Positions 51,201-59,867 of a stretch of DNA of 64,000 bases are shown here, one piece after another; the first letter of the stretch is position 1; the number at the start of each line of letters is the position of its first letter. The notes beneath the pieces were generated by a model. The model ran no database searches. It saw only the letters and a list, made by a program, of their open reading frames with translations, and was not told the DNA's origin. The stretch is from Auanema rhodensis. Lineage: Eukaryota; Animalia; Nematoda. The stretch spans positions 8,122,001-8,186,000 of the forward strand of contig OZ059899.1 of the NCBI GenBank assembly GCA_964057225.1, read 5' to 3'. The translations under genes and the position numbers were made by a program.

Positions 51201-54200
51201 TCCAGCAATCTTCTTGTCTTTATATTCTTCAATTCTTCATTATTTTGTCAGACTTTCTTGTCATCTTATCAAACGTTGATCAGTAGCAATTGCATATACA
51301 AACTTAGCAAAACACGCTAGAAACATAAACAACATATTCTGTACTTTATTTTAATGTTAGCAATATACATTTTGAAAAATTAATATACAGATACAGATAT
51401 ATATTATATTATATAAATATATTTTCTAATTTTATAAATCTGATGACGATGTTGATGATGATATTTCAATTTCTTTTTTGTTATATTCTCTTCTCTTCCA
51501 CATACATCTGATCAAATATTGTACCCACAGCTTTTGCCACCTCGTTTTTTCTTCTTCTCTCATTTAATTTTCCTCCCTCTCTTTTTTCTCTTCACTTTAT
51601 TTTTGATATATCTAAACTAATTCTATATAAAGCATTATTTCTTTTGGTCATTTTACTATTCCAAAGAAAATTTCTCCTTTTTTGCCGCAGATTCCAGCTT
51701 CTCAATCCCTTATGCTCACTTGCATATATATATAGGATTAGTCTCGTCTTCACTCTGCTTCCTTTCGTACTATTTATTTCCATTTTTATTTAAATCTTTC
51801 TTATTTATAATTATTCATTTTCATAACTATATCTCATTCGTTTCTACATCATCACCCTTGTCATCAGTTTTGTCATCATTATCTTCTTTTTTCTGTCATT
51901 TGGACTTTATGATGGTCATATAATATATATTATGAAGAAGCGTTGAGTTGAATAAGTCCTTGATCGGAAATTTTTGCTTTCAGTTTGAAACTCTCCTTTT
52001 CCTTGCTCTCTCGTAAGAGCTTTTCATCTCTCATTCGTCTCTATCCTATCCTTTACTATCCAACTACTATCTATGTAGTTCTATAGCATTCATCACAAAA
52101 TCAGTTTTTTTTGTTCTTTTTGTCTCTTATTTCAGCTTTTTTTTAAAACTTGTTGCATTGATTTCGAACCAATTTGACTCATTTCTCACTACTACCTTTT
52201 CGCCTACTCCTTTTCCACCTCATTCGCCTCAATTCAGATTTTCCCCTCATTTCTTCGATTGCTTTTCTTTCCGTAGATGGATGTAAGACAAACGAAAGAC
52301 TCTAAATTCCAAATGATAATGTCATCCGATGCCCCCCGTTTTCTCTTCACCCTCCGAACTTTTCTTTTCAATCTCCAGCATTAGACACAGTCAATCGTAT
52401 CCATCCGATATGTGTTCTCAACTTTTTCACAAAATTTCATATGACATGAACAAACAACGCATGTTATTTCTATCCTATATATATAATATAACCCTAGTCT
52501 ATGTATAGTTTATAATATTTTCTTCTTCTCTTTAATAATTTTTTTATTTATCTTTATCTTTAACTCTTATTATGTGCTTTTATAAACTTTTTTCAAGCTT
52601 CATCTTCAAGCTATAAGCACATCTACAACCTATTTCTTTGAATGTACCTGAAGATGTTTTGTTTTAAAGCTTAATCTTATCAAATCAACATTCCTCTTGC
52701 AATTTTAACGTATTACATCCATTTCATCTGAGTTCGCTTGTTTTCTATTGCAGACCTCATTTTGCCCTCCGACTCATTCGTCTTCAGCCACTGGCACAGC
52801 TTCTCATTGTGTGTGAATAACCTCATTTTTGCTAAAAATGCGTGCAGTCTTCCTTTTTTGGTCAACGACGACGTGTATCCCTAGAATTCTTTTCTGTTCC
52901 TCATAATCTATGTCGATTCAAAAATCGATGCTATTAAATTTTCGTTTCATTATTTCTTTCCGAGCATACATTGAATATACTACAATTTCGAAATCACATA
53001 AGTTTTTTATCATTTTTTTTTAAATTTTCAAGTATTGCTATATCATTTTCCGTGTACATTCAATGTTTTTGTACTTTTTGCGATGCAATATTTAAAAAAA
53101 GGAAATTGAATGAGAGGGTGAATACACTTGAAATACGAAGTTGATGATAAAGCTGAAACGGATGACGGCCCATGTCACTATCCAAAGTTTAACGAAAGGG
53201 GTTTGAATTCAGCTGAAATGATGAAATGAGAATAGTGGATACTCCGTGATTCGATACTGTCATCTTACGACACGCCAGCTCCAACTGTCAGCTTTCCTTT
53301 CGTTCTGTTTACCCTCTTGACTGGCTTTCTACCTCTTTATATCCTATAATCTATATTCCATCGATTATTGAAGATTTCGTTCCAGTTTTATCATACACAT
53401 ACAAACACACATTCATACATACATCTCTGATTTTCTGCTCCTATTTTCGTTTATTTCAGGATCAGTCTCTCCCTCAATCTCTCTCGATGCAGCTCTCTCT
53501 CTCAACTGTTATCCTATATTTCTTGTAGCATTGCTTCTCTCTCTTTTTTTTTAAATCACCTTTTCAATGTGGCTGTAGACAAAAATCAAATCCTCATGTG
53601 ATATGCTAAAAGAACCTGGAAGCTTTTCCAGCTGAGACAATCTCTACGAACCTATCGCCTATCCCTCTCTCAATCTATATCTTTGTCTGTCTGGCATTCT
53701 CTCTTCTCCGCTGCCTCTTTTCGTTTTTCTTTCTTATTTTATCTTACGGCTCAGTCTTGTCTTCTCTTTATCTGTTTCAATGACCTCATGACTTCTGAAG
53801 TTATTATTTTCTATTGTTTTCTGAGTTTGTTGCTACTGTTCGTCTCATATTTCATCGTGATTTTTCAAATAATTTCATTAACTTGTTCATATTTTCAGAT
53901 ATATTCCACTTAATATATTTCTTGCCGTGTTTGCAGTGCCTTTAAATACAGATATTCTATTTCTATCATAGGTTAGTTCAATTTTATTTTTTATTCTTTT
54001 GTTTTTTTATTCAAAAATTCTCAATATCAACGTATCGGTTATTCAAATCAAATCAAGACGTTTCATAATTTGTTTTCGAAATTGAAAATATTTTTATGTC
54101 AAAACATCCTAAACATCTTCAGATAGTATCTTGAATTTGCCATGTTTAGCTTTTCATTACGAGCCCCTAAACTTCTTGTTAATGTGTCTCACGTGTGTTC

Positions 54201-56129
54201 TCCACGTGTTTGTCCATCTCTTGAAACGTTTTGGGCCACTTCGTTCGTTAGTAGCCGACACTTAACTCAAAAGTCAAAGATAGACAGACTATCGACAGGA
54301 GCTGTTGCTTTCTCCGTTTTATCTGACTAACAGAAATATTTTTCGTATTCCTTTAATTCTCTTAAAGTTCTCATAGTCTTTAGAATAGCGAAGAAAAAAA
54401 TAATTTTCTAAGTACTCAAGTTTTACGAGGATACGATCCAAATCAGGGATGAAAACAAAAAAAAATTGGATAAATCGAATGCAACTACTTAGTTTGCTCA
54501 TATACAAATAATGAAATAATGGTTTTCCACAATCCGGTTACCTGAAAAGTACACATAAAGTAAAAAGTAGTATCATTATAATTTTTTAAATTAATATTGT
54601 AGAAGATGAAAGAAGATATTTAAATAATTTTTATGTTTAATCCATGACCAACACATACAAAAATGCATTTTTTTTGACAATTTTCATTCTTTTTTCTTTT
54701 CATTTTCTAATTATTGCATGGCTTTCTCATTAAAGAAAAACTAATAAAATTCTGTACATATCCTGGTAACTGAAGAAAAAAGAAAGAAAACATAAATCCT
54801 AATCTTTCATTTTCATTTTATTTTAAGATTTTTTTTTTATAAAATTATAGCTTATTTATTATAATTTTGATATGGTGTTCCATCAAATTCATGAGAAATG
54901 AACATTGAATAGACACGATATGCAATTCAAAGCACATTCGCCTATCGTTCCATCTATGTATGAAATCGTAATGTTCAAAAATTGGCTTTTGCATTTAGCT
55001 TAAGATCATATGCCCTGTGGTGTATGTTGTCGTTTGATATGCTGTAGAAATTCCTCATTTGACATAGCATAATTTCGAAATGAATAGCCGCAGAACTGAC
55101 CATCTGCTGTTCAGGATTAGAAGAGATGTCGTCTTTTGGTGCATCGTTTGATGTTATTCGTTTGTTCATGATACATTCTACTCTGATGATATATACAAAT
55201 TGACGAGAATATCGGGACTTATTCATACAACATCGAAGAAATGAACAGATAAATGACTTCTTTAGAAGTTCATATGCTATCTAGTCTTCAGATTTGACAG
55301 TTCCAAATGTATATAGATGAGAATTATTAGCTACAAAAGCTTTAATTAGAGTTCTGTATGATTGTTCTTCGCTATCTTCTGTTCTTTTTCACTAGGACCA
55401 TCACAATTTCGATGAGTAGATCTAGAAGTTTTCTCCGATTTCGCAAGTGTTTTCATGTATCCTGACAGAGAAAAGAAAAGAAAGGATTGAAGATGAAAAC
55501 CCTTGTAGAGCTATTTCTGTCACACCTTCTTCATCTGCAGCTTCTGCCTCTTCGTTCTTCCATTGTACTCGGTCGCGTGGAGCTGAGCTTAGCCATAGAA
55601 ACGTCTTGTCCACCTGGTTGCTTAGATGGTCATATAGGTGAGGAGAGATAGGATAACAAGGCGAAGTATGGAAAATAGAAAAATGCAGTGAGTGGGAGAA
55701 TAGCGAGTGCGAGAGAAAAGAAGAACAAGTTTGAGTGCTGCTCTGCGAAAAAGGGAGGAGGGAAAGAGACAAAACATTCTCTTTGCTCTCACCCGCTCTC
55801 CTTTGGTCTCGACTCACCCTAGAAGAGATTAAACTGACAGAGGCAGCAGAAGAAAGAAGACGAACGATAAGATACATCTACTCCGTCTTAATTTTCTTTT
55901 TATTCCGCATTTTTTCGCTGAAACTAATAAAAATTGCGAAATAAATAACTTCATCTTCTTACTTCGTGAAGTTCCAATCGTCGTAGCCATCATTATCTCA
56001 TATACTGATTATTACATACTATTCTCTAGATCAAATGACGATGTTAATGATGAAAAGGTTGTTCTGTCTTTTAATTTGCTTCGAGCATATCCATGCATTC
56101 CAAATATTCACAAAAAAAAAATCTAACCA

Positions 56130-56139
56130 CCATATATGG
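56130..56139. promoter_or_regulatory. Perfect CArG box (CCATATATGG), candidate SRF/UNC-120 site upstream of sup-12
   Basis: Matches CC(A/T)6GG exactly and lies about 145 nt upstream of the sup-12 ATG. SUP-12 is a muscle-specific factor and UNC-120/SRF is a nematode muscle transcription factor. Confidence 0.45.
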
Positions 56140-56284
56140 ATGTTTAAAATATAATTTTTTCTGCTCATTCCTATAATAATATGAAAATTTCTACCACATA
56201 GTAAACAATTTCATCATAGAATATATAAGAATAACTTATTCACTATTGTATAATATTAATTTTCTTTTTTTTTCTTTCAGTAAA

Positions 56285-59276
56285 ATGCTTCCTTCATCAG
56301 TTTATGGCCAATTGGGTGATCCTATAGTCCAAGCCCTAGTTCAATCAGCTGCAGGTACTGATTCTGGAATAGGTTAGTTACATTTCGATAGTTGTCTCAA
56401 AAACTTTCTCTTCAATATATTCGTTTAATCTGACTTCATTTGGCTAATAATATCTGAAACCTTGCTAAATCAACGAAGATAATAAACATCTAATCAAAAT
56501 GTTTGCTATTTACCGTATTTCTAATTCTAATTTGATTTTTTCGTGATTTTTTGTGATATGGTGTAACAAGTCTATCGAATGGCAGAGCCTATTCAAACTG
56601 CTTCATACTTCTACTGCTTCTCATTTTTCTGATTTTTTTCTATTCTTTAGGCTCTCGTGATACTATGTTCACAAAAATATTTGTTGGTGGTTTGCCGTAT
56701 CATACTAGTGACAAAACTCTGCATGAGTACTTTGAGCAGTTCGGAGATATCGAAGAAGCCGTCGTTATAACAGATCGTCAAACTCAAAAAAGTCGTGGAT
56801 ATGGATTTGTGAGTGCTTGATTTCAATTTTCATCTCATTCTGCTGTTTGCTTTTTTCCCAATTCTAAAAAATATATTATTTGATTTAATAATTATAATTA
56901 TAACAATAATATTGTAATTCTCATAGTTACCTTGTCTGCAAGACAGTTTTCTGAGAGAAAAATAATGATAAAAATATATTAAAATAGATTTTTGTTGGAA
57001 TATGAAACAATTTATCTTTAATATTCAAAAAATGTTTCGCATTGACTATAATATTTCTAACTTTTTTTTCTCGAAGAAAATCATCCTGTTTTTTTGCCGT
57101 AATCCACAACTTTTTTTTAAATCAGCATTTTTGAATGTTTTTGTTTGTGAGAGCGCAAAATACTCTGAAAAATCTCTAGTCTTCTATGTATTTTTCATCT
57201 TCAATGGATTATACACAAAATTTATTTATATCAAATCGAATATTTTGAATTAATATTCAAAATATTAAAAGTTTACTTCACAAAATCAATAATTAACAGA
57301 TGAAAATAATTTTTATTCAAATTTTATTTAAATCTTACTCATCTTTATTGATAGAAGAAATTATTTTTATAATAATTTTTTTTTAGGTTACTATGAAAGA
57401 TCGTGCTGCAGCTGAACGTGCATGCAAGGATCCAAATCCTATTATTGATGGAAGAAAAGCTAATGTAAATTTAGCATATCTGGGAGCTAAGCCAAGGAAT
57501 AATGTTCAACTAGCAGGTAAATATCATTACTGTGATGAGTAAGCTTCTACGTTTGGTGTTCTTTCAGCACTCGGAGCTGCTGCAGGAGCTGTGCAACTGC
57601 CACTTCAGACACAGCTTCAAGCTTTATTTCCTGCACGTGTTGGGTACGTTTTCAATTTCAAGTTTTGGGTCGTTGAAGTAATTAATGAGCAATTTCATGC
57701 AAATATTGCTGGAGCAAGAATTTATTTTTGATATACAATATGATGAAAATATTAAAAATGAATGCTGATAGTTTCGAGAGAAGTCTCGTTTTAGACAATT
57801 GTTGGAAGGATATAGTTAAGCAGAATCTTCTCATACTTCTTCCAATTGATTCTCCCAATTTCTCTCTCTATCTCTCTATATAAGGAAAAGGTGACAATCT
57901 AAGCTCTGCGTGTGTTTGCTCTTTGTTTTGCCCGCAGACTGATCTGGTAACATACTCCAGAAGTAGATTTTGCCGTTTTTTCTATTACAAAAAGTATAAT
58001 AAAAGCTGTGCTCTGCTGTGAGAGAGTGCTCTTGCCGTGTATTTTAATCTATAAAGTTGACTTCTCCACTCCTGTTCCCGCATTTTCTTCCTTTACCCTC
58101 CAACAACAAAAATAAAACAAATGGTTTAATCCAGCTTCTACTACTCTATTCTACTATTTCAACTGAAATATCTTCTTTTTACCTTTTTTTTTCAAATTCA
58201 CATTTTCTATTTTATTCGTTACTTTTTTTCCTTTCTTCTAAATATTTACCTCTTTTCACCATTTTTCTCCAAAATACAATGAACTTTTTGTTATTATTCG
58301 AAAATGGAAAACATTATGATTTGTTTAAAAAATGGTGACTAACATGTATCTTTGTTAATTTCTTTTCAAACTTGAAAAGCTTGAGCATGAAATCTTTCCA
58401 AACTATCTATCTTTCCCTCACTCTCTTTCCTTACGTTTATGACTTCTATTTCTATCGCATTTTTCCTAAATTCCCCTATTTAATATTATAATTAGTCATA
58501 TTCAGTTTCACACATTTACTTCTGAAAATCTAGCGAGATATAGTTTAGTTCAAAAAATGTTTTTGTTTCAAAAACTGTAGAAATTATTATCTGCTAGTCT
58601 GCCGTGTCGATTGACAAGCTAAATTCCACACATTTTCATCCATAATCGAACTTTTAAAATTAATTTTGTTTCACATACGTTCCGAAAAAAAAGTTGATTA
58701 GAGAAAATTGAATGAACATGTGTAGAATATCGGATGGCGTATCTGTAACTGCTGCACGATCTGGTTGCACGTTTCGCACGTGCTTTGTACGCCGTGCCAG
58801 ATAGATTTGCAAATCCTTTCTTAAGCTTGAGATGTGATGTAATAGACAACAAAGCCTATGCTCTAATGAAATACTTATTATGTTTACTTCTTATTAACCT
58901 TCTTCTTTGCAGACTTCCACAGCTTTACTATCCCAGTGCCGCAGCGGCTGCTGCCGGACTTGTTAATCCACTCCTCGGATCTCCAGCTGCCGCCGCGGCA
59001 GCTCAGCAACAGCTCATCGACTACAATGTATTAGCTCAGGCTGTTGCTAATCAGCAGGGTCAAGCTGCTTATGCAATTTCTCCACAAGGTTTGTTTTAGT
59101 TTTAACAATCAATTCTTATCTGAATATATGCATTTGCAGTCTCACATGCTGGTCTTGAGCAATATGGGTATACAACAGCAACCAGTGGATACGGTTTGCT
59201 TCCTGGAGCATTTCCACTTCAGCAAGCTCAATTAGCAGCTGCTCAACAAGTGCAACTTGAACATCAACGAGTTTGA
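56285..59276 (+). CDS. sup-12: SUP-12 (RBM24/RBM38 orthologue), muscle-specific single-RRM splicing regulator, 254 aa, 6 exons
   Basis: Exons 56285-56372, 56651-56808, 57387-57516, 57568-57643, 58913-59088 and 59140-59276 (765 nt). The RRM reads [90 protein letters not shown], near-identical to C. elegans SUP-12 as I recall it. An A/Q-rich C-terminus ends EHQRV*, and a strong TTTCAG acceptor lies 4 nt before the ATG. Confidence 0.95.
57938..57946 (+). other. Candidate 9-nt poison microexon in sup-12 intron 4
   Basis: The sequence is CTTTGTTTTGCCCGCAG|ACTGATCTG|GTAACA. Inclusion gives GG|A CTG ATC TG|A, a junction-spanning stop codon. Confidence 0.55.
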
Positions 59277-59867
59277 GTTTAATATAGAAAAGGAAAACTC
59301 ACGAGTTGAGCCACACATACATCTGAAGCCTTACATTCTATTCTTTCTGAAATATCTATATATACGTATGAGCGAAACCAGTTTCTTGAATATACATTAT
59401 ACATATGCACAGAGAGTTTCGAGCAACCATCTTAACCATTCATATATTTTGTATTTTTTCTGTAATATCAGGCTTGTCTATGTTGAAAAGCGCCTGTCGT
59501 CGTTGCCTTCAAACTTTTGTCTTCATCATAGGATTCTGTCTCAACTATATATATGCATCTCTCTCTCAACCTCTCTCTCGTCCCCCTCTCTTCCTCCCTT
59601 GTCTTGCTATTATCTTACTCAATTTATACCAATTCAATATCTAGTCCTTACTATGAAAAAAACGTTTAAACTTTGTGTGGCCGTTATTAGCCATGTACCA
59701 TATATTTGAAATGGTTCATTAGCTAGTCGTTTCCCGTGTTGCCTCTTAATTGCCCCTTTCCCATCACAAGTGCCATCAAAAAAAGATAAAAGCACAAATA
59801 ATGCTCTCATGAATTATTTACTCCTAAAGTTATATTTCAATTTATACACAACTTGATTTATAATAAT

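Follow-up and report, generated by a model that had tools for sequence, protein, structure and literature searches.

The stretch of Auanema rhodensis DNA analysed here (64,000 nucleotides, contig OZ059899.1 of assembly GCA_964057225.1, positions 8,122,001 to 8,186,000; hereafter the window, whose own numbering is used throughout) carries on its forward strand a sup-12-like gene of six exons, which encode a protein of 254 amino acids with one RNA recognition motif (RRM) and an Ala/Gln-rich tail. The RRM matches Pfam RRM_1 with an E value of 9e-18. The closest public protein is that of Auanema sp. JU1783 (97% identity), SUP-12 proteins of strongylids and Caenorhabditis reach 78-88%, and vertebrate RBM24 and RBM38 lie farther away; the gene is a SUP-12/RBM24-38-type RRM gene. 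Its fourth intron (57644-58912, 1269 nt) contains a conserved block, and this block probably harbors, at 57795-57890, the orthologue of the stop-carrying cassette exon that gives rise to the short isoform of C. elegans sup-12, while a 9-nt AG...GT pair farther downstream, proposed in a sequence-only reading of this DNA as a poison microexon, looks like a product of chance. The coding exons are the following.

56285-56372, + strand: exon 1 (gene model)
56651-56808, + strand: exon 2 (gene model)
57387-57516, + strand: exon 3 (gene model)
57568-57643, + strand: exon 4, ends ...GTGTTGG in phase 2, last exon common to the long and short forms (gene model, GT..AG junctions in spliced RNA contigs)
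58913-59088, + strand: exon 5, begins the Ala/Gln-rich tail, LPQLYYP... (gene model, RNA contigs)
59140-59277, + strand: exon 6 (gene model)

All RNA runs that contain this gene belong to a single study (P1; runs X1-X4) for which the library type is unrecorded. RNA contigs from these runs show splicing at each predicted GT..AG junction, which confirms the gene model and shows that mRNA is present in the runs. The dominant junction between exon 4 and exon 5 is canonical and is the only such joint in the contigs. The features within and around the conserved block on which the interpretation depends are given below; a slash marks a splice boundary here and in the following.

57768-58072, + strand: conserved intronic block, 305 nt (blastn and alignment to JU1783)
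57795-57890, + strand: proposed 96-nt stop cassette exon, cgttttag/ACAATTG ... AAAAG/gtgaca (JU1783 conservation, cross-species layout, RNA contig start; donor presumably used)
57817-57819, + strand: in-frame TAA ending the short form; TGA at the same codon in JU1783 (alignment)
57859-57879, + strand: conserved CU-rich tract of the polypyrimidine-binding-protein type inside the proposed exon (JU1783 alignment)
57908-57915, + strand: GCGUGUGU, a (Y)GUGUG motif of the SUP-12/RBM24 type, 18 nt 3′ of the proposed donor, invariant in JU1783
57794-58941, + strand: RNA contig that begins at the alternative acceptor, retains the remainder of intron 4, and enters exon 5 without splicing; identical start in X1, X2, and X3

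When the locus is compared with JU1783 by blastn, exons align at 78-90% identity and introns do not align, except for the 305-nt block and a weaker patch near exon 5. The block is 84% identical to its JU1783 counterpart (locus L001), a level otherwise seen in exons. The acceptor ttttag/ACAA is identical in both Auanema species, and joining exon 4 to 57795 in phase 2 yields the tail G-QLLEGYS with a stop after eight codons, the same peptide being encoded in JU1783. Within the block, no donor-like GT other than AAG/GTGACA at 57891 is conserved and at the same time agrees with 6 or more of 10 consensus positions. An alignment of the proteins P0129, P0122, P0002, and P0001 assigns the proposed exon to the homologous intron, where it follows immediately on the glycine codon split by exon 4. 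We infer that the 57891 donor is used, that the resulting mRNA is sensitive to nonsense-mediated decay (NMD) in this species, and that its formation is under the control of SUP-12.

A second line of evidence comes from RNA. The contig that starts at 57794 is continuous to 58941 in X2 and X3 and assembled in two pieces in X1, while X4 contains partial pieces. Genomic DNA contamination does not explain this contig, as no RNA contig covers 57644-57793 or intron 2. Sampled words of 57768-58072 are found at a fraction of 0.88 in the four RNA runs versus 1.00 in DNA runs, which fits RNA devoid of the 26 nt preceding 57794. The contigs were built from 31-letter words, such that a start marks the first base common to two converging paths. 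The end of exon 4 (...TTGG) and the end of the preceding intron sequence (...TTAG) share one base, and the start predicted for an exon 4-57795 joint is hence 57794, as observed; joints with exons 1, 2, and 3 predict 57792, 57795, and 57793, respectively, and the C. elegans spliced leaders SL1 and SL2 would predict 57793. We infer from this argument that the contig start reflects the exon 4-57795 junction. The intron-containing RNA seems to be a minor form, roughly judged from the single depth figure available per contig (about 10 for the intron-containing contig versus about 172), which serves as a rough guide only. No RNA contig is placed over the rest of exon 5, exon 6, and the 3′ untranslated region (58942-59400), although the mRNA is clearly expressed; this gap probably stems from a read-placement filter acting on GCN/CAG-rich sequence, and no conclusion is drawn from it.

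The same contigs bear on two other explanations. Since the assembled molecule keeps the downstream 1022 nt of the intron, the sampled form may be an alternative-acceptor or detained-intron isoform, and one could argue that only the 57795 acceptor is used, with the remaining 1118 nt retained, the same stop codon, an extended 3′ region after it, and no cassette exon at all. This molecule is the one seen in the contigs, which in X2 and X3 span 57794 to 58941 without a gap, and transcript contigs from other nematodes (L003 and L005) likewise retain intron 4 after removal of introns 1-3. However, the AAG/GTGACA donor is conserved, C. briggsae and strongylids contain clear AG...GT cassettes, C. elegans sup-12 is scored as having a cassette exon, and a minor spliced path would vanish during contig building. 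We therefore regard use of the acceptor without the donor as unlikely, if worth serious consideration. The two transcript-like contigs (L003:870-938 and L005:727-826) derive from other nematode-like organisms and join exons 1-4 while keeping intron 4; in the L003 contig, GG/gtaagtaa gives an immediate stop. These contigs suggest that intron 4 is slowly removed in general.

Alternatively, the block might act as an internal promoter or trans-splice acceptor, giving rise to an RNA of its own with a start near 57795 and with exons 5 and 6 in common with the main mRNA. The contigs indeed begin at 57794 without upstream sequence, and the joint between exon 4 and 57795 is not seen in them. Yet conservation extends only 27 nt upstream of the start, the contig bears no spliced-leader letters, and JU1783 does not keep the single ATG (58866) that is in frame with exon 5, which together make an internal start quite improbable; moreover, C. 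elegans has an internal exon annotated at the homologous site.

The third line of evidence is the recurrence of the same layout in distant genera. For this comparison, C. elegans was represented by its isoform protein P0129, and the genomic exon layout was taken from C. briggsae. In intron 4 of C. briggsae, the arrangement tttaag/ACAAGTGGCTGGTTGA...CCAAAG/gttaggcgtgctttgacgtgtgcc (gttaggcgtgc) delimits a segment of 53 nt with a stop after four codons, which encodes exactly G-QVAG followed by the stop and thus equals the tail of the C. elegans short isoform. AG/GT-bounded segments with a stop after four to five codons are also present in three further genera.

Necator: 59 nt, tail GCMSCG-stop, followed after the donor by gttaggcgtgcgtgtgc
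Haemonchus: 46 nt, tail GYMRNG-stop, followed after the donor by gttaggcgtgcgtgtgcg
Diploscapter: 49 nt, tail GHLVS-stop, followed after the donor by gttaatttgccgcgtgcagtgtgtc

In A. rhodensis, GCGTGTGT follows the donor at 57891 after 18 nt. GCGTG and GTGTG both lie at most 45 nt from the donor in six of six loci, against a background of 0.1-0.6% of 45-nt windows in these loci that hold both motifs. Among the 51 AG/GTR sites on the + strand of the window, a single one, that at 57891, has both motifs downstream. Judged by its sequence, GCGUGUGU is a candidate intronic enhancer for self-control by SUP-12. In Steinernema, the site ctgcag/ATGCGTCGGGGTGGTTTGA occupies the same intron and is followed by a stop after five codons; it was not counted, as GCGUG/GUGUG is missing near a donor. 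In contig L004 (ENA), exon 4 and exon 5 are separated by an insert that has no clear GT/AG ends; it was set aside.

Intronic blocks of about 300 nt that are conserved are often enhancers, and the indels in the present one are not multiples of three, meaning that most of it is non-coding. It might accordingly be a transcriptional enhancer acting at the DNA level, for instance in muscle, and be unrelated to splicing. The conserved features are, however, strand-specific RNA signals (acceptor, short reading frame, stop, donor, and GUGUG) that recur in distant genera whose sequence is otherwise unalignable, and the boundary of the RNA contig coincides with the acceptor. A purely transcriptional role is thus extremely unlikely.

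The sequence-only reading had placed the stop-generating exon elsewhere in the block, 143 nt downstream of the start of the proposed stop exon. Two further features are relevant to this claim.

57938-57946, + strand: 9-nt candidate, cgcag/ACTGATCTG/gtaaca, with the donor GTAACA at 57947-57952; judged non-functional
58002-58049, + strand: conserved UGCU/GUG-rich stretch including GCCGUGUAUUUU (JU1783 alignment)

As far as the letters go, the description was accurate: AG/ACTGATCTG/GTAACA is found at 57938-57946, inclusion reads GG/A CTG ATC TG/A and builds a TGA across the junction, the product would end ...ARVGLI after 153 amino acids, and the stop would lie 175 nt ahead of the last junction. 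The GTGTG at 57910-57914 and the UGCU/GUG-rich sequence 3′ of the candidate (58002-58049) are likewise in place. The acceptor had been called good; its AG is present and conserved in JU1783, but it lacks a UUUU run beside the CAG, which nematode acceptors usually carry. That the GTGTG serves as an element upstream of the microexon acceptor does not hold, the conserved GUGUG sitting instead downstream of the 57891 donor. Nor is an AG-9nt-GT arrangement conserved in orthologous introns: JU1783 keeps the acceptor and has lost GTAACA to a 4-nt deletion (GGAATC), and no counterpart of the 9-nt candidate was found in the introns of C. briggsae, Necator, Haemonchus, and Diploscapter. In the alignment, JU1783 is identical at six of the nine nucleotides, differs at three, and lacks the GT, whereas the 75 nt preceding the candidate acceptor, including GCGTGTGTTTGC and the CAG, contain a single change. 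The 9 nt and their donor constitute the least conserved part of the 305-nt block, the opposite of what is expected for a functional microexon.

How often such a pattern arises by chance was estimated from first-order Markov simulations of the intron, searched for a pyrimidine-rich AG, 3-27 nt, and a GT that agrees with the donor consensus at 6 or more of 10 positions. Under these loose criteria, the real intron 4 contains four candidates, as compared with a mean of 2.8 in simulated introns, and 84% of the simulated introns contain at least one candidate making a premature stop. No microexon inclusion is seen in the RNA contigs, in which exon 4 is joined to exon 5 (57642/3 to 58912/3) without letters in between; this absence is weak evidence because contigs drop rare variants.

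The 9-nt exon might nevertheless be spliced in at a low level, with the TGA at its junction mediating a lineage-specific autoregulation of SUP-12. For this speaks that the locus has both AG and GT and that the arithmetic is correct, that JU1783 keeps the acceptor as well as the GUGUG upstream of it, and that a missing contig counts little where rare variants are lost. It is opposed by the deleted donor and the three changed nucleotides in JU1783 next to 75 nt with one change, by the chance-level frequency of the AG...GT pattern, and by an RNA contig that passes unspliced through 57938-57946. Conserved C. elegans microexons (bioRxiv 10.64898/2026.09.14.751627) resemble the candidate in size class (3-27 nt) and AG...GT bounds; the high-confidence ones have so far retained acceptor and donor alike across species and mostly maintain the frame without a stop, whereas the donor of the candidate is missing in the sister species. 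Low-level inclusion of the microexon is very unlikely on these grounds, and the 9-nt AG...GT pair seems to have arisen by chance within conserved regulatory sequence. The underlying idea, i.e., a stop-introducing alternative exon in this intron that gives an RRM-only product or an NMD target and that SUP-12 itself may control, fits the evidence; the exon concerned would be that at 57795-57890 rather than a microexon. More generally, stop-making intronic AG...GT pairs are to be expected by chance, and conservation around them can belong to a neighbouring real exon.

The claim that intron 4 is the longest of the gene was partly correct: its length of 1269 nt stands, but it is only the longest coding intron. 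The first exon of the main mRNA is non-coding, has its 3′ end near 53969 (53940-53969), and is joined to the acceptor just before the ATG (56280/56281), leaving an intron of about 2.3 kb in the 5′ untranslated region, longer than intron 4; the main-mRNA contig bears no spliced leader. The public JU1783 model P0001 (205 amino acids, L001:8550-8588) ends ...AVASHVPFGSYNMHV and appears to run into intron 5; it is probably a mis-annotation lacking the splice to the last exon.

Several other features of intron 4 were recorded. The UGCU/GUG-rich stretch at 58002-58049 is probably further intronic regulatory sequence, and a similar sequence, GCCGTGTTTT, is found in C. briggsae at L006:5127. A second conserved patch in the 3′ part of the intron comprises TGCACGATCTGG and AAGCTTGAGATGTGATGTAATAG/ACAAC (58753-58764 and 58823-58850), the latter being another tag/ACAA acceptor-like site with a stop soon after it in both Auanema species. 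In Necator and Haemonchus (L002:9062-9101 and L008:11244-11281), the sequence GGCACGCATGT(G/A)CGTTTGGGGTGA...GCTGCGTGCGTT lies 60-90 nt before exon 5 and forms an RBFOX-type GCAUG/GCACG cluster beside a GUG-rich stretch, which suggests regulation at the 3′ end of intron 4 as well. In 55800-59800, an Rfam scan (E<=1) found no known structured RNA in the block and returned only a sub-threshold plant miRNA match inside exon 5. A CGAGA-loop-TCTCG hairpin (57775-57788) precedes the 57795 acceptor; its stem is kept and its loop changed in JU1783, but its stability does not exceed that of shuffled sequence (z about -1), and the hairpin was given no weight.

The proposed A. rhodensis exon is most likely of a known kind that has already been annotated in C. 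elegans and is here added from a further species. The annotated short isoform of C. elegans sup-12 (T22B2.4; NP_001129938/NP_001379963, UniProt H2L051) comprises 151 amino acids and ends ...PRMG-QVAG (P0129). Its exon occupies the same intron, with ...R(V/I/M)G on one side and LPQ(L/M)YYP on the other; ACAA follows a U-rich AG, the tail starts with Gln, an early stop leaves the RRM intact, and GCGUG/GUGUG comes after the C. briggsae copy, as it does after the exon described here. The two differ in length (96 versus about 53 nt), tail (QLLEGYS versus QVAG), donor (GTGACA versus GTTAGG), and donor-to-motif spacing (18 nt here versus 6 nt in Caenorhabditis), and the C. elegans exon is annotated, whereas use of the A. 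rhodensis exon is putative. In a microarray comparison of wild-type and smg-1 embryos, the C. elegans sup-12 cassette showed a log change of -1.85, the inclusion form being up in smg-1, and the authors named sup-12 among NMD-targeted splicing factors (PMC2265522). SUP-12 is known to bind (U)GUGUG (PMC3875643), and in an in vivo reporter screen of random 10-mers placed in the intron 3′ of an alternative exon, enhancement in muscle was strongest with GUGUGU, which was matched to SUP-12 (PMC13199693).

A parallel exists in the orthologous vertebrate gene family. Exon 4 of mouse and human Rbm24 carries a stop after the RRM and yields RBM24-S (122 amino acids), which has lost the Ala-rich C-terminal domain; in the mouse, its inclusion is raised by the gene's own protein, RBM24-L, and by the paralogue RBM38 (PMC13099659). 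The mouse system differs in that the transcript is stable under NMD inhibition in human embryonic kidney (HEK) cells, RBM24-S has targets of its own, and no cis element has been reported (PMC13099659). By sequence, Rbm24 exon 4 appears to sit at the homologous junction: the glycine before L/IP.Y.YP is residue 116 in Xenopus RBM38, and the 122 residues of mouse RBM24-S fit this position. RBM24/RBM38 isoforms of a brachiopod, a termite, and primates (P0049/P0047, P0076, P0104, P0094, P0097, and P0085) split at the junction homologous to that of exon 4 and exon 5, a hot spot of isoform divergence in animals. Predicted primate RBM38 isoforms split exactly after ...RTYG, Lingula RBM24-B contains an in-frame cassette of 35 amino acids at ...QYG/LPAQYIYP, and a termite isoform ends ...SQYG-Q. 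The poison exons of SR/hnRNP genes (PMC13099659, citing Lareau 2007 and Ni 2007), to the extent that they are described there, are similar in being stop-carrying alternative exons of splicing regulators, in the conservation of exon and flanking intron at or above exon level, and in the motif for the gene's own protein next to the exon; in the present case, conservation has so far been traced within rhabditid nematodes only, and NMD coupling and self-binding are putative.

If the exon works as proposed, joining exon 4 to the 57795 exon would add eight codons (QLLEGYS plus stop), and the mRNA would either be removed by NMD or encode an RRM-only protein that lacks the Ala/Gln-rich tail. SUP-12 bound to GCGUG/GUGUG 3′ of the weak donor would promote the stop exon, and the likely result would be a negative feedback in which more SUP-12 leads to more stop-exon inclusion and less full-length SUP-12. 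The acceptor of the 9-nt candidate and the UGCU/GUG-rich stretch would then be part of the downstream regulatory intron sequence. Taken together, the layout is consistent with SUP-12 autoregulation.

A number of observations weigh against this interpretation. No contig contains the exon 4-57795 or the 57890-58913 junction, and the contig that bears the exon is unspliced to exon 5; the assignment of the contig start to the former junction turns on a single base in an assembly graph. The proposed exon is longer (96 nt versus 46-59 nt) than those of other genera, its donor GTGACA and motif spacing differ from their GTTAGGCGTGC, and in a MAFFT alignment of five genera the exons of distant genera align only loosely, for which reason the motif layout was compared by position. 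The sup-12 exon is scored 'PTC: no', i.e., without a premature termination codon, in Table 3 of the C. elegans microarray study (PMC2265522), and the mouse exon-4 transcript is not NMD-sensitive in HEK cells (PMC13099659).

To our knowledge, self-regulation of SUP-12 has not been reported in C. elegans. SUP-12/RBM24 is a dosage-sensitive muscle splicing regulator, and a stop exon at the same junction, with the protein's own motif after the donor in four lineages and a parallel in the mouse, provides a concrete cis element for probing such self-regulation in C. elegans. In mice, deletion of the equivalent stop exon or long-form overexpression results in hearing loss (PMC13099659). It is tentatively conceivable that the stop exon and GCGUG/GUGUG form a SUP-12 self-control circuit across rhabditids, located in the same intron as Rbm24 exon 4 and the break-points of RBM38, brachiopod, and termite isoforms, and that this circuit is ancient in bilaterians. 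If this is true, homeostatic self-splicing of RBM24/RBM38/SUP-12 at one junction would be an ancient trait of bilaterians.

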